From positions 124,001-188,000 of the forward strand of contig JALMLS010000369.1 in assembly GCA_038496445.1 (NCBI GenBank): a stretch of DNA of 64,000 nucleotides. Reading direction: 5' to 3'. This DNA is from Trichosphaerium sp. ATCC 40318 (Eukaryota; Protista; Tubulinea). A model generated the notes under the pieces. The model was not told where the DNA came from. It saw only the letters and a list, made by a program, of their open reading frames with translations, and ran no database searches. The position numbers and the translations under genes were made by a program. This document shows, in pieces, positions 50,826 to 59,764 of the stretch; the stretch's first letter is position 1; the number at the start of each line of letters is the position of its first letter.

Positions 50826-53055
50826 CTATCTCCACAATAGTTCTATGGCGAGCACACAAACCAATAAAATAAAATGTACACCTAGAGCTGTTAAATACAT
50901 TACGTTATATACACGTACCAACAGTCGAACAAGAAGACGGTGGACCTTTTGTTGGCGCGGTAGTAGATATCGGCGGTACAGTCATCGGTGACATAGTAGC
51001 AGGTGAAAGCGTTGTTGGAGATACAGTATTTTGAGAACCAGTTGGAGGTATTGTACCTACACATGTGTAAATAAACCATAGGTGTTGAAAGACGTACAAT
51101 TTAAGCTCAATGGGAAGATATCATTTTGTGGAAAGTAACATCCTTCGTCTGGACTTCGACATTCGTTTGCTGTACACGAATTTGTGTCGTCGCATCTAGC
51201 ATTCTGACATGTACATTCTTGATTGCAAGTGCATTCTGCTTTGCATGCTGGGCCACACAAACTTCGTACTTCTGTTCCTGTGTAGTGTTAACCAAACGGT
51301 GAATGGTATTTTTCGTTACCTTGACATAATTCACTTTTAAAGGCCCGTAAAACACTTGATATAATGCTAATACGTGCAATGTTAATGTTGAAAGAAAATG
51401 GTAACACTTTATTAATTCCAATTCCGATTGTCAGTGAGTAAAGTGCAAATCCCTATTTTTTCTCAATAAATAAAATTGTGTTGCTTTGATACCTCAGATT
51501 CGAGAGTGTTTGTGATATTGTCATTTGAATCAAAACCATCACATTTGGAACCACGATATTGATTGACAATCATCACTTTTTTATTTCGTCCATTTCTACC
51601 ATATTTATCGAAATGATCACGTGCAACCGAAAGACCTTGAAATACAAATATTAGATTCAACAACTCCGGTGAAATAACAAATCTACCTGTTGTAACATCA
51701 TCACATCCTCCCAGTAAGTTGATAGTACGAATGTTGTTGAGTTGTTCAAGAAAGTAAGATTTGGAGTGGCTCCCCAAAGGCAATACAACTTGAGCTGTAT
51801 CTCGATACAACGTGATACCAGTACGATATCCATACTCTCCAAGTTTGAGTGGAGTGATCACATCAATCATAAATTGAAAGTACAAGTCCCAGTTTAAGTG
51901 TGTGCAACACTCTTCGAGTGATGATCTATTGAAATAACCATATCCACCGCTAGGCCCTTGACTACACTCGGATGCTAATGTATTTTTGTTAAGTAACAAA
52001 TAAATAAGGCTCTATTTATACCTGCTGTACCACACGTCAAAGTGTGTAAGACATTTTGAGAAGCACCAACAACTACAAAGCGTAAACACACTTGTGGAGA
52101 TGAATAAGTTAAAAGTTGTAAGAACTGACCAAACATCAAATCTGTTGTATCAATGCAAAGGGCATCAGTACAATTATCCATTACTGGAAAGTTGCTGGAT
52201 GTTGGACTCCCAATATCAACAATAACATCATCTGAAAATACAATCCTATTTTCAAAAAATGAGTGACAACGAGACTAACACTTTATAATGCAATACGCTT
52301 CTCCTTACCTGGCTAGTTCCGTTGTTCCTTCAATGTAGTATAACTCTACAACATCTAAAAATGTACCAAATACACTTAGATCCCGTTCTCTTTGGAACCG
52401 AGTCCTTTAATAAGCAACAATTAGCATCACAATAATCCAAAATACCAAACTGTTGTACGTATTTACAACAATGTGAGAAGGTAATGTTGATCGATGCTTG
52501 ATTGTCACGTGGTGCGTTTCTTCTTTGTCAAGCCATGACATGGCATCAAATGGGTTCTCACTCAGACCGATATTGTCTTTCACTCGTCTGAGGCATTGAG
52601 TTTCGCATACTGTGTACTGTACAAGCGACCTCTAAGAACGATTAAAATAGAAGTTGTAATAAATAGTCGACATGCCGAAGAAGATGACCAGTTTTCTCCA
52701 AAGTACTTCTCAGTACTTTCTCTATTGAAGTAGACGTCTGCAGTTTCGATAGTATCATTTTGACTAAACACGTGATACCCAAAAGATCCATATTGTACAG
52801 CCTTGAAAGCACGTGTCAGTTGGTCAACGTTTAATGGATATTTAAAGCGCGCCGTAAAACTGTACGTACAATACTTGTATTTTTTCCATACATAACGGCT
52901 TCTGTGTCAAGATCATAGCTTGATGCGTCTACCATAAACTGTAACAAGACTGACAATATTATTATTTGTAAGGCACCTAATCAGCGGTATGTTATACTCA
53001 ACATGGATACAATCGTGGTTGTTCTACTTATACACAACGTACGTATCGAATACAT
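50826..53055 (-). CDS. Receptor-family copy 3: kinase-less short ectodomain (N-domain, VWA, one Cys repeat, stalk), predicted GPI anchor
   Basis: Signal peptide MYSIR|ALQIIILSVLLQFMVDAS; VWA paralogous to copies 1/2; ends PSSCSTV|GVHFILLVCVLAIELLWR* with no cytoplasmic domain. Confidence 0.8.
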
Positions 53056-53071
53056 GTGAACAATCTTTTTT

Positions 53072-53707
53072 ATGAATGAAGATGTGGAACATTTCAAGCG
53101 TTTGGTTGGACTGAACAAGACTGTCAATATCGAAGGACACAATAGGCAACAACAACAACAATGGCGAGTAGCAATCAAAACAACAACAGCAATGCAAAAA
53201 GACTTAAAGTGGTGGCATGATATGATGGACCTATGGAATGGTAAGGCAATTTTACTATGTCCATTACCATTATCAAAAGGTTTGTTTCAAACAGACGCTT
53301 CAAACATAGCAGCAGGCGCGTTTTTAAATGGTTCATGGCTTATCCATGTCTTTACAAAAGAAGAAAAAAAATGGCATATCAATGTTAAGGAGATGTATGC
53401 GGTGTGGATGGCAATAAAAGAATGGAAACACTTATTTGCCAATAAACTTATCAACAATTTATTAGTGGATAATACAGGAGTAGTTGCATCAGTCAACAGA
53501 CTGGTAATGCGCAATTCCAGAGCTATGAAGATGATATACGATCTGCATAAATGGTCGGCAGCATTCGGATTCCGGCTTACTGCAACTTGGATTCCCTCAG
53601 AAGAAAATACCCTTGCTGACGCTTTAAGTAGACTGCAAACACAACAATTTTATACCAAAGCAAATCAATTAGGCTTTTTTAATGTAACAGGACGTTTTAT
53701 TAAATAA
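53072..53707 (+). CDS. DIRS/Ngaro-type RNase H with upstream RT-RH tether
   Basis: DLKWW...WNG tether; FQTDAS, HINVKEM, VDNTG, WIPSEENTLADALSR (D-E-D-D catalytic set). Confidence 0.9.
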   Translation: MNEDVEHFKRLVGLNKTVNIEGHNRQQQQQWRVAIKTTTAMQKDLKWWHDMMDLWNGKAILLCPLPLSKGLFQTDASNIAAGAFLNGSWLIHVFTKEEKKWHINVKEMYAVWMAIKEWKHLFANKLINNLLVDNTGVVASVNRLVMRNSRAMKMIYDLHKWSAAFGFRLTATWIPSEENTLADALSRLQTQQFYTKANQLGFFNVTGRFIK

Positions 53708-53794
53708 ATTTATTTAGAATTCTTAACAGAAGTACAAAACAAACGTATTAGAATCCTGCGAGAGGCCTATCCCAGAAGTACAAGCAATAATAGA

Positions 53795-54775
53795 ATGTCA
53801 GCTATAAAAGCAGTAGTTATTGCACTGCTCAAGCTCAATATTCCACAAAGTCAATGGATGCCTTTGAGCTCTCAACACATGCAACTGGTAGTAGCATTGT
53901 GGGCAAAAGAATCAGCAGAGGAAGAGGGGTTAAAGCCTGACACTATCCGCGTATACTTCTCACATTGGGCATGGCTTTCGAAAAGATTAGGTTATGCTGA
54001 CCCAAGAGAAAATTGTGTATTATATCATGATATGTTAAGAGGCCTTAAAAGGAAGGTAGGAGATAGAGTAGACAGAAAACGACCTATGACAGCAGTGATG
54101 TTATTGAACATAAGAAAAAAAGTGGATTTGCGACAAAACAAGGATCTGGTTTATTGGACAGCAGCATTAATGGCATTTTGGGGAATGCTAAGGATAGGTA
54201 ACTTGGTTCCTCGTAAAGTAGCAGAATTTAGTGTCGATAGACACGTATCAAGGTCCAACATAGAGTTTGACGGTGATACTTGGTGGTTTACACTTAGACA
54301 AACAAAAACAATTCGATTCCGTGAGAGAAAACACGTAATACCGTTTCTGGATATGGAAGGTCACCCTTTATGCCCTACAACAGCGATAAACAGACTAATT
54401 AAACAGGTCAAACCCATACAAGGAAAATCCCTGTTTAGACACAAGAACAACGGAAGATGGTCACAAATAACATACTCTAAATTTGTAAAATGGACCAAAC
54501 TAATGGTTTCAAAGATGGTAAATAATACTAAAGAATATGCTGGACACTCATACAGGCGTGGCGGAGCAACACATGCAGCTGCAGCAGGAGTTCCTAATGA
54601 ATGGATAAAATATATTGGCGATTGGAGCTCAGATGCATATCAAATATACATTGTAAAAAACAAAGAAGACAGATTAATAGCACCAAAATTAATGTTTCAA
54701 TGGCTTAAACATGGCCTTGATCATACAGATCGCGCTGGGGAGGATGGTCAACCTCAACCATGGCTAGAGGATTGA
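53795..54775 (+). CDS. Tyrosine recombinase (DIRS-type)
   Basis: FWGMLRIGNL (R), RQTKT (K), LCP, HSYRRGGAT (HxxR), GDWSSDAYQIY (W, Y); the frame is open for another 29 codons upstream to 53708. Confidence 0.93.
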   Translation: MSAIKAVVIALLKLNIPQSQWMPLSSQHMQLVVALWAKESAEEEGLKPDTIRVYFSHWAWLSKRLGYADPRENCVLYHDMLRGLKRKVGDRVDRKRPMTAVMLLNIRKKVDLRQNKDLVYWTAALMAFWGMLRIGNLVPRKVAEFSVDRHVSRSNIEFDGDTWWFTLRQTKTIRFRERKHVIPFLDMEGHPLCPTTAINRLIKQVKPIQGKSLFRHKNNGRWSQITYSKFVKWTKLMVSKMVNNTKEYAGHSYRRGGATHAAAAGVPNEWIKYIGDWSSDAYQIYIVKNKEDRLIAPKLMFQWLKHGLDHTDRAGEDGQPQPWLED

Positions 54776-54780
54776 CGTGG

Positions 54781-55192
54781 GTAGAATAAATCCGCTCGTG
54801 TGGCTACGCTAGAGCCACCAAAGACTGAGCGTCTTTCCTCCCAAGCGCGTCTCCCTTATATTGACAACGTTGTCCAATCTAATGAATGAAGATGTGGAAC
54901 ATTTCAAGCGTTTGGTTGGACTGAACAAGACTGTCAATATCGAAGGACACAATAGGCAACAACAACAACAATGGCGAGTAGCAATCAAAACATCCCCTCA
55001 CCCTCCCTAAAATCCTTTTCTTTTTCTTGTAAAAATTTTTTCTTTATTTTTCCTTCAAACACATTTGCAATTCACACGAGTGTTCTTAAATGTAGAATAA
55101 ATCCGCTCGTGTGGCTACGCTAGAGCCACCAAAGACTGAGCGTCTTTCCTCCCAAGCGCGTCTCCCTTATATTGACAACGTTGTCCAATCTA
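54781..55192 (+). repeat. B1-A2-spacer-B2 split-direct-repeat terminus of the YR element
   Basis: 101-bp B copies and 111-bp A copies appear identical by eye; B carries AATAAA and the palindrome GACAACGTTGTC. Confidence 0.9.
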
Positions 55193-55588
55193 ATTGCAAG
55201 TTTTGCAGGGTACACAAAAAATACTGCAAAAAAAATGCAAATCTGAGTAAAAAGATGCTTTCAAACCTTGCTCGCTTTATATATCTATTTAATTATCGAT
55301 TCAAAATAATTTGAATGCGGATTGGTGTGTACTAAAATGTCGAAAAAATGTCAAAGTGATATTGAACTGTTCGCCACAAAGGGAGACAACTGGGTTATGG
55401 CGCTCAGTCGCCGCTAGGCTCTGCCCCCCCCAAACCCCCCCTGAAAGGGGGGCTTTCTAAATAGTTCCTATGGCATAATATAGGATAATTAGTGTGCCGA
55501 ATTTTCGACTTTTTTTTGACAAAGTTCTACATATTTGGGTTTCCCTGCGGATTAAGTCACCAAAACTAGGGGAAAAAACGGTTTGTTC

Positions 55589-55925
55589 TAGTACTGTTAA
55601 CGGTCCGACTCAACTCAACTCGACTTTTTTTGAGAAAACGGTCTGAGTCGACTCAAAAAAAAATCATCTGAAGGTATCTACATCATTTTTTTTCTGGAGT
55701 TTCACTGTCACAAGCATCCATGTGTGGCCACACACCTGATTTGGTGGAATACACCCTTTTAGCCATCAATCAGACACTGTGTGATTGCAACAATACGAGA
55801 AAAAGAACTTAAAACCAGGTTTTTACAATTTAGATGTGTTTTTTTAAGTCGACTCAACTCAGTCCGACTCGACTTTTTGTAAAATCAGTCCGACTCGACT
55901 TAAGACTGAGTCATTAACAGTACTA
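55589..55925. mobile_element. hAT-like MITE (337 bp)
   Basis: TIR TAGTACTGTTAA...TTAACAGTACTA; 8-bp TSD gtttgttc/gattgttc (1 mismatch); subterminal (C)GACTC motifs at both ends. Confidence 0.8.
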
Positions 55926-56109
55926 GATTGTTCGTTCAATCTACTCAAGTTGGAAGATGGTTTATTAATACTTTAGGAGAGGAGTGAGAACAATGAATGT
56001 AAAATTGCTAGGCTGACGCCATACCAGTAGCAAATAACATGCACACTAGTTCTTGAAGTTGTTCATCACCACGATATTTTTTATTTACTGTAAACATTTT
56101 ATTGTTTTC

Positions 56110-59100
56110 TTATCTCCATAATAGTTCTATTGCAAGTGCACTAATCGCTATAATAACATGCATTTCTAAATCTGTTACTAAGGGTGTACTGTTAGAAACA
56201 CGTACCAATAGCTGAACAAGACGATCGTGGACCATTCGTTGGTGCCGTAGTAGGTGTTGGCTGTACAGTGATAGGTGGTATAGTATCTGGAGAAATAGTT
56301 GTAGGGGTTGTAGGTATTGTTGTAGGCGCAAGAGTTGTTGGAGGCATTGTAGTTGGTACTAGAGGCAATATAGGCTCGAAACAACTTGGATCAGGTTCAT
56401 AGATGCATTCTGGATTGTAGAAAGTTTGATTTGGAGCTTCAGGAATTTGAAATGGAGCCAAGTGCCAACTTGTTAGACTTGAATCATATATCATACACGG
56501 AGGTGTCCGTGATGAGCAAATCTAAAAATTCTTAACCTTTTTTTTACAAGAAAATTCACGAATGACGTACATCTGAGAGTTGAACAGATACACAACCAAA
56601 AACAAATTCTTTGCTAGGATCACAATATTGTAAGACAAAGGAGTCTCCTTCTTCACAAATAAATGCAGGTGATCCAGGAACTCTTTTTTCGGTAATACAC
56701 GTGCCAGTTGTAACATCGCAGTAAGATATGTTGCATAAATCAGAAGATACACAATCAGGGGAGCATGGTATTTCGGTATTGGGAATACACTCTTCTCCAT
56801 TCTCATAGAAACATTGCAACGGCGCTAAAATTTTCAGATAGTAGAAAGTAAGTTGAAACATACGGGCTCTACAAAATGTTCTAGCAGAAGCGTTTGTTCT
56901 TTCAGGATTGCAAAAAGAAGGTGAACCGCCTGCGCATGATTGTTAAAAAACCACAGGGTTGCAAAGACGTACAATGTACGCTTATTGGAATAACAATGTT
57001 TGGGAAAATTTCATTTGGTGGGTAATGACATCCTTCGTCTGGACTTCGGCATTTGTTTGCTGTACAAGGGTTTGCATCATCGCATCCGGCATTATAACAT
57101 GTACATTCTTGATTGCACGTGCATTCTGCTTTGCATGATGAGCCACACAAACTTCGTACTTCTAAACAAGGTATTTGCTAAAGGTGAATGATATTCTTTG
57201 TTACCTTGACACAATTCACTTTTAAAGGCCCGCAGAACACTTGATATAGTGCCAATGCCTGCGATTCCGATGTTGAAAGAAATTGGTAACACTTCAGCAG
57301 ATGTTCCGATTGTCAGCGAGTAAAGTGCAAATCCCTATTTTTTCTCAATAAATAATATTGTGTTGGTTTGGATACCTCAGATTCGAGAGTGTTTGTAATA
57401 CTGTTATTAGGATCAAATTCACCACATTTGGGACCACGATATTGATTGACAATCATCACTTTTTTATTTCGTCCATTTCTACCATATGTATTGAAATGAT
57501 CACGAGCAACCGAAAGACCTTGAAATACAAATATTAGATTCAACAACTCCGGTGAAATAACAAATCTACCTGTTGTAACATCATCACATCCTCCCAGTAA
57601 GTTGATAGTACGAATGTTGTTGAGTTGTTCAAGAAAGTAAGATTTGGAGTGGCTCCCCAAAGGCAATACAACTTGAGCTGTATCTCGATACAACGTGATA
57701 CCAGTACGATATCCATACTCTCCAAGTTTGAGTGGAGTGATCACATCAATCATAAATTGAAAGTACAAGTCCCAGTTTAAGTGCGTGCAACACTCTTCGA
57801 ATGATGCTCTGTTGAAAGAACCATATCCACCGCTAGGTCCTTGAAGACACTCACGTGCTATTTTATTTCATTTAAGGGGGCACGCTGAGATGTGCAGAAA
57901 TTGTTCAAATCGGCTCAAATTTTCGTGCCTATATCTTTGACATGAGGGCTTTTGAAAAACCCAACTTTTAGCGTGTGCCTTTTTGTGACGTTTTTTTGTT
58001 GCAAAAGTTTTTTTTTTCAAAAAACGACTGCATTTTTTCAATCTTTCTGTTTAAAAGCACATTTGTTCAAAACTACGTTACCCATAGCATCTACACACGT
58101 AGTACATGCTATGGGTACACTTTCAATAAAAAGTCTCAATTTGAAAGCAAAAAAAATAACGAATTTGCTCTACACCACCTAAAATGCGTCTCCAAGTGGT
58201 GAAATAGCGGACGAATAGCTTTAAAAGTTGTTTCAAATCCGTGTAATTAAGGTCAAAAAGTTGAGAAAAAAAATGACATTTCGGGCTTTGAACTCAAGTA
58301 ATCAATCTACACAGTTCGCTATCCTATTTTTTCAGCGTTTTACGCGATTTTAGATGGGTTTAAAGCCCGAAGATGCCCGTGGGGCTAAGGTCATTTCATT
58401 CTCAGCGTGCCCCTTAAGTAACAAATAAATAAGGCTCTATTTATACCTGCTGTACCACACGTCCAAGTGTGTAAGACATTTTGAGAGGCACCAACAACTA
58501 CAAAGCGTAAACACACTTGTGGAGATGAATAAGTTAAAAGTTGTAAGAACTGACCAAACATCAAATCTGTTGTATCAACGCAAAGGGCATCAGTACAATT
58601 ATCCATTACTGGAAGGTTGCTGGATGTTGGACTCCCAATATCAACAATAACATCATCAGAAAATACAATCCTATTTAAAAAAGTGAATCACGTTACATTT
58701 AGCTTCTCCTTACCTGGCTAGTTCCGTTGTTCCTTCAATGTAGTACAACTCTACAACATCTAAAAATGTACCAAACACACTTAGATCCTGTTTTCTTTGG
58801 AACCGAGTCCTTTAATAAGCAACAATTAGCATCACAATAATCCAAAATACCAAACTGTTGTACGTGTTTAAAAACATGTGAGAAGGTAATGTTGATCGAT
58901 GCTTGATTGTCACGTGGTGCGTTTCTTCTTTGTCAAGCCATGACATGGCATCAAATGGGTTCTCACTCAGACCGATATTGTCTTTCACTCGTCTGAGGCA
59001 TTGAGTTTCGCATACTGTGTACTGTACAAGTGACCTCTACTAACGATTAAAATAGAAGTTGTAACATAAATTAATAGTCAACATGCCGAAGAAGATGACC

Positions 59101-59467
59101 AGTTTTCTCCAAAGTACTTCTCAGTACTTTCTCTATTGAAGTAGACGTCTGCAGTTTCGATAATGTCATTTTGACTAAACACGTAATAGCCAAAAGATCC
59201 ATATTGTACAGCCTTGAAAGCACGTGTCAGTTGGTCAACGTTTAATGGATATTTAAAGTGCACCCGTAAAACTGTACGTACAATACTTGTATTTTTTCCA
59301 TACATAACGGCTTCTGTGTCAAGATCATAGCTTGATGCGTCTACCATGAACTGTAACAGGACTGACAATATTATTATTTGTAAGGCACCTAATCAGCGGT
59401 ATGTTATACTCAACATGGGTACAATCGTGGATGTTCTACTTATACACAACGTACGTATCGAATACAT
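56110..59467 (-). CDS. Receptor-family copy 4: kinase-less full ectodomain, predicted GPI anchor; MITE in one intron
   Basis: Same N-terminus as copy 3; VWA; two Cys-rich modules; WHLAPFQIPEAPNQTFYNPEC block; PTT stalk; ends PRSSCSAI|EMHVIIAISALAIELLWR*. Confidence 0.8.
57876..58413. mobile_element. Non-autonomous TTAA-specific DNA transposon, Kolobok-like (538 bp)
   Basis: TTAA at 57872-57875 and 58414-58417; TIR GGGGCACGCTGAGA / TCTCAGCGTGCCCC; the paralogous intron in copy 3 (~51989) has a single TTAA; purine 5' termini favour Kolobok over piggyBac (CCY). Confidence 0.8.
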
Positions 59468-59764
59468 GTAAACAATCTGTTTTATTGCAAGTTTTACACG
59501 CTCTTTTAGTGCACAAAAACCAACGGAAAAAAACTTTGCTATTCAAAGAACGGTGACAGCAGTTGACTAAAGACTCATGACGGATTCAAAAGCTGGTATA
59601 CTATCGATAATCCCTGTGAGATGAGCGTGAACAGTTCCTAGTAGCTTAAGTTATACGTATTTGTGCTGATTGTCGTTTAGCGGTCAGCTTATCCATACAA
59701 TACTAGTGGCAAGGCAAAGCTCAATTTAAAAGATGAGCATTTATAATAACGTGACTAAACTGTT

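Follow-up and report, generated by a model that had tools for sequence, protein, structure and literature searches.

The window (the whole 64,000-nucleotide stretch of DNA analysed, C119:124001-188000) contains a tyrosine-recombinase (YR) retroelement delimited by split direct repeats in the arrangement A1-...-B1A2-x-B2. The element extends from 53072 to 55194 (2123 bp), with the same start as in the original prediction (53072-55192, 2121 bp) and an end that lies 2 nt further downstream. The repeats, which had been described as complete and identical in appearance, proved to be 100% identical in both pairs, over 111 nt for A and 103 nt for B. B1 and A2 overlap by 2 nt, and the A repeat is 111 nt long in the window copy versus 112 nt in the full-length copies described below. 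Between A1 and B1 the element retains 1.6 kb of coding sequence. The features of the element, together with a paralogue of its insertion point, are the following:

53072..53182, plus strand: repeat A1, 111 nt, 100% identical to A2; 5' leader and first seven gag codons
53072..53707, plus strand: ORF1, a fusion of 211 aa; 37 N-terminal residues read from A in a frame other than that of gag, then 174 residues from the RNase H portion at the C terminus of pol
53161..53220, plus strand: what is left of the true gag start; translation from the 53161 ATG gives 19 codons (MASSNQNNNSNAKRLKVVA), then a stop
53182..53183, plus strand: deletion junction; last-but-one base of A1 joined to mid-pol (residue ~354), no microhomology
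53705..53794, plus strand: pol stop TAA and 29 open codons in the same frame, encoding a conserved N-terminal part of the YR upstream of the first YR ATG
53795..54775, plus strand: YR ORF2, 326 aa from the first ATG, catalytic set intact; Phage_integrase match, E 1.1e-5
54781..54883, plus strand: repeat B1, 103 nt, 100% identical to B2
54882..54992, plus strand: repeat A2, 111 nt, 100% identical to A1
54993..55091, plus strand: spacer x between A2 and B2; C-rich tract at its start, recurring in five of six families compared
55092..55194, plus strand: repeat B2 and 3' end of the element, 103 nt, 100% identical to B1; termini compared in 28 copies
59436..59505, plus strand: empty-site paralogue of the insertion point, ...CTGTTTTAT|TGCAAGTTTT; precise insertion, shared A/AT

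The original prediction had reported two uninterrupted ORFs with full catalytic sets and neither gag nor reverse transcriptase (RT), and both statements hold: all the RNase H and YR residues are in place, and no RT or gag was found in the window copy. In Pfam, ORF1 weakly matches reverse-transcriptase RNase H domains, and its residues 38-211 match residues 354-527 of the pol protein of a full-length copy. Catalytic residues were assessed in alignments of the window proteins with those of seven other copies from the genome, six or seven of which belong to diverged sister families. In these alignments of eight family members, no variation occurs at D75, E107, D133 or D183 of RNase H, nor at R133, K171, H251, R254, W277 or Y285 of the YR. 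Neither the YR nor the RNase H protein, used singly as a query against PDB sequences, gave anything useful; a profile of the eight YRs matches Cre recombinase (E 2.8e-8) across the LRI, GHSxR and GxW motifs.

Comparison with the empty-site paralogue reveals a precise insertion. The filled site reads ...CTTTTTT[ATGAATG...CCAATCTAAT]TGCAAGTTTT, target-site duplication is absent, and A or AT is common to the target and the B-A junction (CTAATGAATG). In the flanks of 28 copies, an A precedes TGAATG in 20, and the base after CTAA is C, T or A. A precise insertion without target duplication fits recombinase-mediated integration of a circular intermediate at the B-A junction, by which the element may have entered this site and which has been proposed for this class of elements (PMC7192593).

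The surroundings of the element are themselves repetitive. The left flank (52072-53071) belongs to a five-copy segment, 94-97% identical, that lies in a cluster of paralogous genes and is also present at C119:192724 and at C139:4971 and 8134; its paralogue within the window (58497-59495) is 94% identical, with homology reaching 10 nt past the insertion point on the right. Just to the right of the element (55324-55546) lies a dispersed repeat of ~210 bp with at least 40 genomic copies at 86-98% identity, for which no tRNA or Rfam match was obtained. Rfam and tRNA scans of the interval 52500-56000 were likewise empty. Within the element, the middle of A (53106-53130) and the last 25 nt of B (54858-54882 and 55169-55193) display a 25-nt imperfect (76%) inverted complementarity, and the minus-strand fold of B1-A2-x-B2 has a modest z-score of -2.8, which offers no clear lead.

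Full-length relatives and the deletion junction

The search for relatives covered the 70.3-Mb assembly in its 642 contigs. With the 2123-bp element as query, the only contiguous match from base 1 to base 2123 was the window copy itself, and five other places (one each on C77, C398 and C566, and two on C452) match from base 112 onwards at 99.5-99.9% identity. In four of these five sibling copies A1 is found ~2.8 kb further upstream; the C566 copy runs off the end of its contig before A1 is reached, and many 1-bp indels are present there. A search for further 2.1-kb copies and for a full-length partner thus left the window copy single and recovered full-length partners with the same A and B repeats.

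The full-length copies measure ~4.93 kb and comprise A1, gag, TGA, RT/RNase H, TAA, YR, B1A2, x and B2, in that order. Their gag protein has 582 aa and a CX2CX4HX4C zinc knuckle at its end, their pol protein of 527 aa contains an RT domain (RVT_1, E 1.6e-17) followed by RNase H, and their YR matches Phage_integrase; these are the only three ORFs of at least 150 aa on either strand of the full-length element, and no further Pfam domain was detected in it. In the C398 copy (L032) gag, pol and YR are all open and lie in one common reading frame with single stops between them, the stop contexts being TGA CAA TCA after gag and TAA ATT TAT after pol. The C77 copy (L031) carries a private 10-bp insertion (AATATTATAT) in RT, at element positions 2411-2420, and its pol is split into two frames. 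The two C452 copies, which form an inverted pair, and the C566 copy have both flanks in common and therefore represent one insertion that was later duplicated, so that the full-length copies amount to three independent loci (C77, C398 and C452/C566). The members of the duplicated locus also have in common a 186-bp in-frame gag deletion, located away from any repeat boundary.

Other arrangements of the same repeats were also observed. The copies at C452:4196-8619 (minus strand), C452:11535-15966 (plus strand) and C566:10064-13834 (minus strand) have an A-gag-pol-YR-B form without A2-x-B2. Solo A-x-B units of 312 bp, 83-100% identical to A2-x-B2 of the window copy, occur at no fewer than 30 places on many contigs (L007-L030). 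The genome further harbors five sister families with the same layout and exact A and B repeats.

Aligned with its full-length siblings, the window copy differs by a single gap, corresponding to the loss of one contiguous block of 2811 bp relative to C77, or of 2801 bp relative to the copies that do not carry the private 10-bp insertion of C77. The missing block, which begins at the A1/gag boundary and ends in the RT-RNase H connection, includes gag and the whole RT domain. In the full-length copies the 5' breakpoint reads ...CAATCAAAACA|TTGGTG and the 3' breakpoint ...GTACACAAG|ACAACAGCAATG; both are blunt and have no bases in common. Splicing was rejected as the cause, given that the missing block starts with TTGGTG and not with GT, though it ends in AG. 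The lack of microhomology at the breakpoints likewise led us to reject a homology-driven deletion or assembly collapse, the nearby ACAACA(A/G)CAATG similarity lying 20 nt from the junction in A.

The junction is unique in the genome. A 100-mer spanning it (53133-53232) matches over its whole length only in the window, all 38 of its other matches breaking at position 50/51, and neither this 100-mer nor the 2123-bp element, used as queries, uncovered further insertions with the same junction. The deleted gag-RT block was found at only five genomic places, on C77, C398, C452 (twice) and C566. Furthermore, when the genome was searched with the protein sequences of the YR and of the RT portion of pol, 17 other YR loci of the same and related families were found, each with an RT 1-2 kb upstream, which leaves the locus of the window copy as the only RT-less one. 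The original prediction had named beforehand, as the outcome that would speak against a minimal family, a single copy with a plain internal deletion, and this is what the genome contains, with the deletion at 53182|53183.

A junction seen only once raises the question of an assembly artefact, in which the true locus would be a full-length 4.9-kb element and 2.8 kb would have been lost through the assembler or a chimeric read. The family does have several near-identical copies that are hard to assemble, and the C566 contig, with its many 1-bp indels, ends inside one of them. However, no repeat or microhomology is available at the breakpoints to drive a collapse, both ends of the element lie in one locus that precisely matches the empty-site paralogue, and the 3' side of the junction carries two substitutions private to the window copy. 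We therefore regard such an artefact as very unlikely.

The same two substitutions bear on the age of the copy. They are the only private differences from all five siblings across the ~1.7 kb from RNase H to B1, and A2-x-B2 shows none with respect to the two copies that carry this segment. The first, at 53263, is a synonymous CCG to CCA change in RNase H, and the second, at 54048, replaces R by K in a variable YR column. One synonymous and one conservative change in a single copy are compatible with selection on RNase H and YR as well as with its absence, and the open RNase H and YR frames appear best explained by the youth of the insertion (two private substitutions in ~2 kb and identical repeats), rather than by maintenance.

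Repeat A and the route of expression

The gag ATG of the full-length copies (gag start, MASSNQNIGDTGKY) is located 23 nt upstream of the end of A, so that repeat A is an ordinary 5' leader followed by the seven initial codons of gag. Another ATG opens the element at its very first base, and in the window copy the frame that it sets in A (MNEDVEHFKRLVGL...) runs into RNase H; translation thus bore out the earlier statement that the ATG is the first base and that A is in frame with RNase H. This base-1 frame differs from the gag frame, and in the full-length copies it stops after 44 codons. The in-frame ATG is fortuitous and part of a short, non-gag leader frame. The further proposal that A resembles the tether between RT and RNase H had to be abandoned: BLASTP detected no significant similarity between the 37 A-derived residues and pol (best hit E 3.9), and the position of A in the full-length copies rules it out as well.

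A conserved N-terminal block of the YR (KRIRILREAYPRSTSNNR, 53708-53794) is encoded directly after the pol stop, upstream of the first YR ATG, and its KR..IL..AYP..T..NRRSA pattern is preserved in the alignment of eight family YRs. Since gag, pol and YR all occupy the gag frame, and the YR is already conserved ahead of its ATG, pol would normally be made in this family by reading on from gag in one frame, and the YR probably likewise; translation of the YR would then start elsewhere than at its first ATG. Measured against intact copies, the length lost from the window copy is not divisible by three and the frame is shifted, so that the gag ATG yields only a 19-residue peptide. The gag-frame route is thereby broken in the window copy, and use of the base-1 ATG or of an internal ATG is possible.

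These results bear directly on the second of two readings that had been offered for the locus, namely a distinct non-autonomous family that parasitizes the RT and gag of other elements, keeps its own RNase H and YR under selection and acquired its 5' repeat from coding sequence. The intact RNase H and YR ORFs with their full catalytic sets, the integrity of all the terminal repeats and the base-1 ATG in frame with RNase H are what such a family would present. Against it, the junction occurs once in 70 Mb and no other YR locus is devoid of RT, A is a leader common to the full-length copies, the fused frame is not that of gag, and with only two substitutions relative to its siblings the copy has had no time for selection to act. 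An amplifying non-autonomous lineage would be recognized by at least two loci sharing the junction, and one was found. The single-copy result largely rules out a distinct family, which we consider extremely improbable.

The first of the two readings, a simple deletion derivative of a Ngaro/PAT-type element, is the one that agrees with the data, in that full-length partners share A and B and differ by one plain deletion. Of the earlier interpretation as a whole, the part concerning a deletion derivative is thus retained and the part concerning a distinct family is not: A is a normal leader, its ATG is fortuitous, the reading frame is broken and there is no second copy. As read in the assembly, the element is very probably a single-copy, recently inserted and internally deleted (~2.8 kb) member of a young Ngaro family.

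Origin of the deletion

The 5' breakpoint of the deletion falls 1 nt short of where the 112-nt A repeat ends, a placement expected by chance in about 3 of 4400 cases, and chance explains it poorly. Across the six families compared, the position at which A ends appears to be conserved as a landmark. In the five of them where the gag ATG could be located, A ends within ~23 nt of it, and in five of the six Ngaro families (including L036, L037, L039 and L041) a C-rich tract (CCCCTCACCCTCCC and similar; 54993-55007 in the window) directly follows A2.

The coincidence of the 5' breakpoint with this conserved boundary suggests an origin linked to replication, in which a cDNA that stopped early in pol would have jumped to the A boundary during cDNA synthesis. 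The main alternative is a deletion that occurred in place, through double-strand break repair, after a full-length element had been inserted. The blunt junction without microhomology is compatible with end joining, and the 186-bp gag deletion of the C452/C566 copies, the only other internal deletion seen in this family, is not at a repeat boundary. However, the copy is extremely young, with identical repeats and two private substitutions, which leaves little time for a later event, and the 5' breakpoint lies within 1 nt of a landmark conserved in six families. On balance we lean modestly towards a replication-linked deletion and hold deletion in place to be a real, if less probable, alternative.

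A more specific version of the replication-linked origin, which we put forward as a long shot, is that the junction records the step in which Ngaro elements normally restore A1 on the basis of A2. To our knowledge, the replication cycle of Ngaro elements has never been worked out. In such a step, minus-strand cDNA would run to the 5' end of the RNA, close to the A/gag boundary, and then jump onto the 3' edge of A2, beside the C-rich tract; a cDNA halted early in pol that made the same jump would yield exactly the window copy. Were this correct, the window copy would be a trapped replication error marking the transfer point of the Ngaro replication cycle. Among the copies read, no other deleted copy with a breakpoint at the end of A was found in this family, and none was recognizable in two sister families; one further A-only match lies at C17:511081-511195.

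Class membership and relation to known elements

The absence of a methyltransferase separates Ngaro elements from DIRS1 and PAT elements. In the present family no methyltransferase domain was matched, and there is no room for one in a pol protein of 527 aa whose RNase H match extends to about residue 503; furthermore, the terminal repeats are direct and not inverted, so that neither a DIRS1-like nor a PAT-like assignment applies. Split direct repeats with internal repeats downstream of YR are present in the window copy, in the full-length copies and in the five sister families. The order gag-RT/RNase H-YR on one strand is seen in the full-length copies, the window copy having lost gag and RT. 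Instead of a DDE integrase the family encodes a YR in which the catalytic R, HxxR and Y are present, and target-site duplication is absent both in the comparison of empty and filled sites and in the flanks of 28 copies. By repeat layout, gene order, domains and mode of insertion, the family is thus classified as Ngaro-type.

Ngaro elements are the non-DIRS tyrosine-recombinase retrotransposons of Goodwin and Poulter 2004, as summarized in PMC4157794 and PMC8547959. The family resembles them in its A1-[ORFs]-B1A2-B2 layout, gene order, lack of a methyltransferase, YR with HxxR and Tyr, and insertion without target-site duplication. We list as differences that its genes lie in one frame with single stops and that the conserved YR start lies upstream of the first ATG; the window copy differs in addition by the absence of gag and RT, which is due to the deletion.

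Deleted Ngaro elements with intact termini have been described before. In the type 2b and ORF1-less type 1 Ngaro elements of Cafeteria burkhardae, a ~2-kb deletion on the 5' side removes ORF1 (gag) and the terminal repeats stay (PMC8547959); those variants are multi-copy and keep RT, whereas the window copy is single and has lost RT as well. The solo A-x-B units of the window element's family are comparable to the solo AB repeats published for Ngaro elements of Cafeteria (PMC8547959) and to SIRE of Trypanosoma cruzi, which corresponds to the A2-B2 region of VIPER (PMC6681497). In contrast to SIRE and to solo AB repeats, the window element keeps coding sequence between A1 and B1.

A further parallel is offered by a Dictyostelium DIRS-1 element without coding capacity for GAG, RT and RNase H, which was mobilized in trans by endogenous proteins (PMC7192593). 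Like the window copy, that truncated test element had lost coding capacity and kept its terminal and internal repeats; unlike it, DIRS-1 has inverted terminal repeats and an internal complementary region. By analogy, and because A1, B1A2, x and B2 are intact, the window copy might in principle be copied and integrated by the proteins of its sister copies. There is no sign that it has moved again, no second copy being present in the genome.

Defective, internally deleted copies are a common fate of retrotransposons, and with 5'-deleted Ngaro copies already published, the window copy matters little in itself. Its analysis removes the idea of a minimal retroelement made of RNase H and a recombinase, a tempting false lead. 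A further result is the description of a very young protist Ngaro family, represented by full-length copies at three independent loci, by a single deleted copy and by 30 or more solo A-x-B units. The conserved boundary of A, together with the C-rich tract that follows A2, may be of use for studying the replication of these elements, and the conserved YR start, which precedes the first ATG and shares the frame of pol, may be of similar use for studying how their recombinase is expressed.
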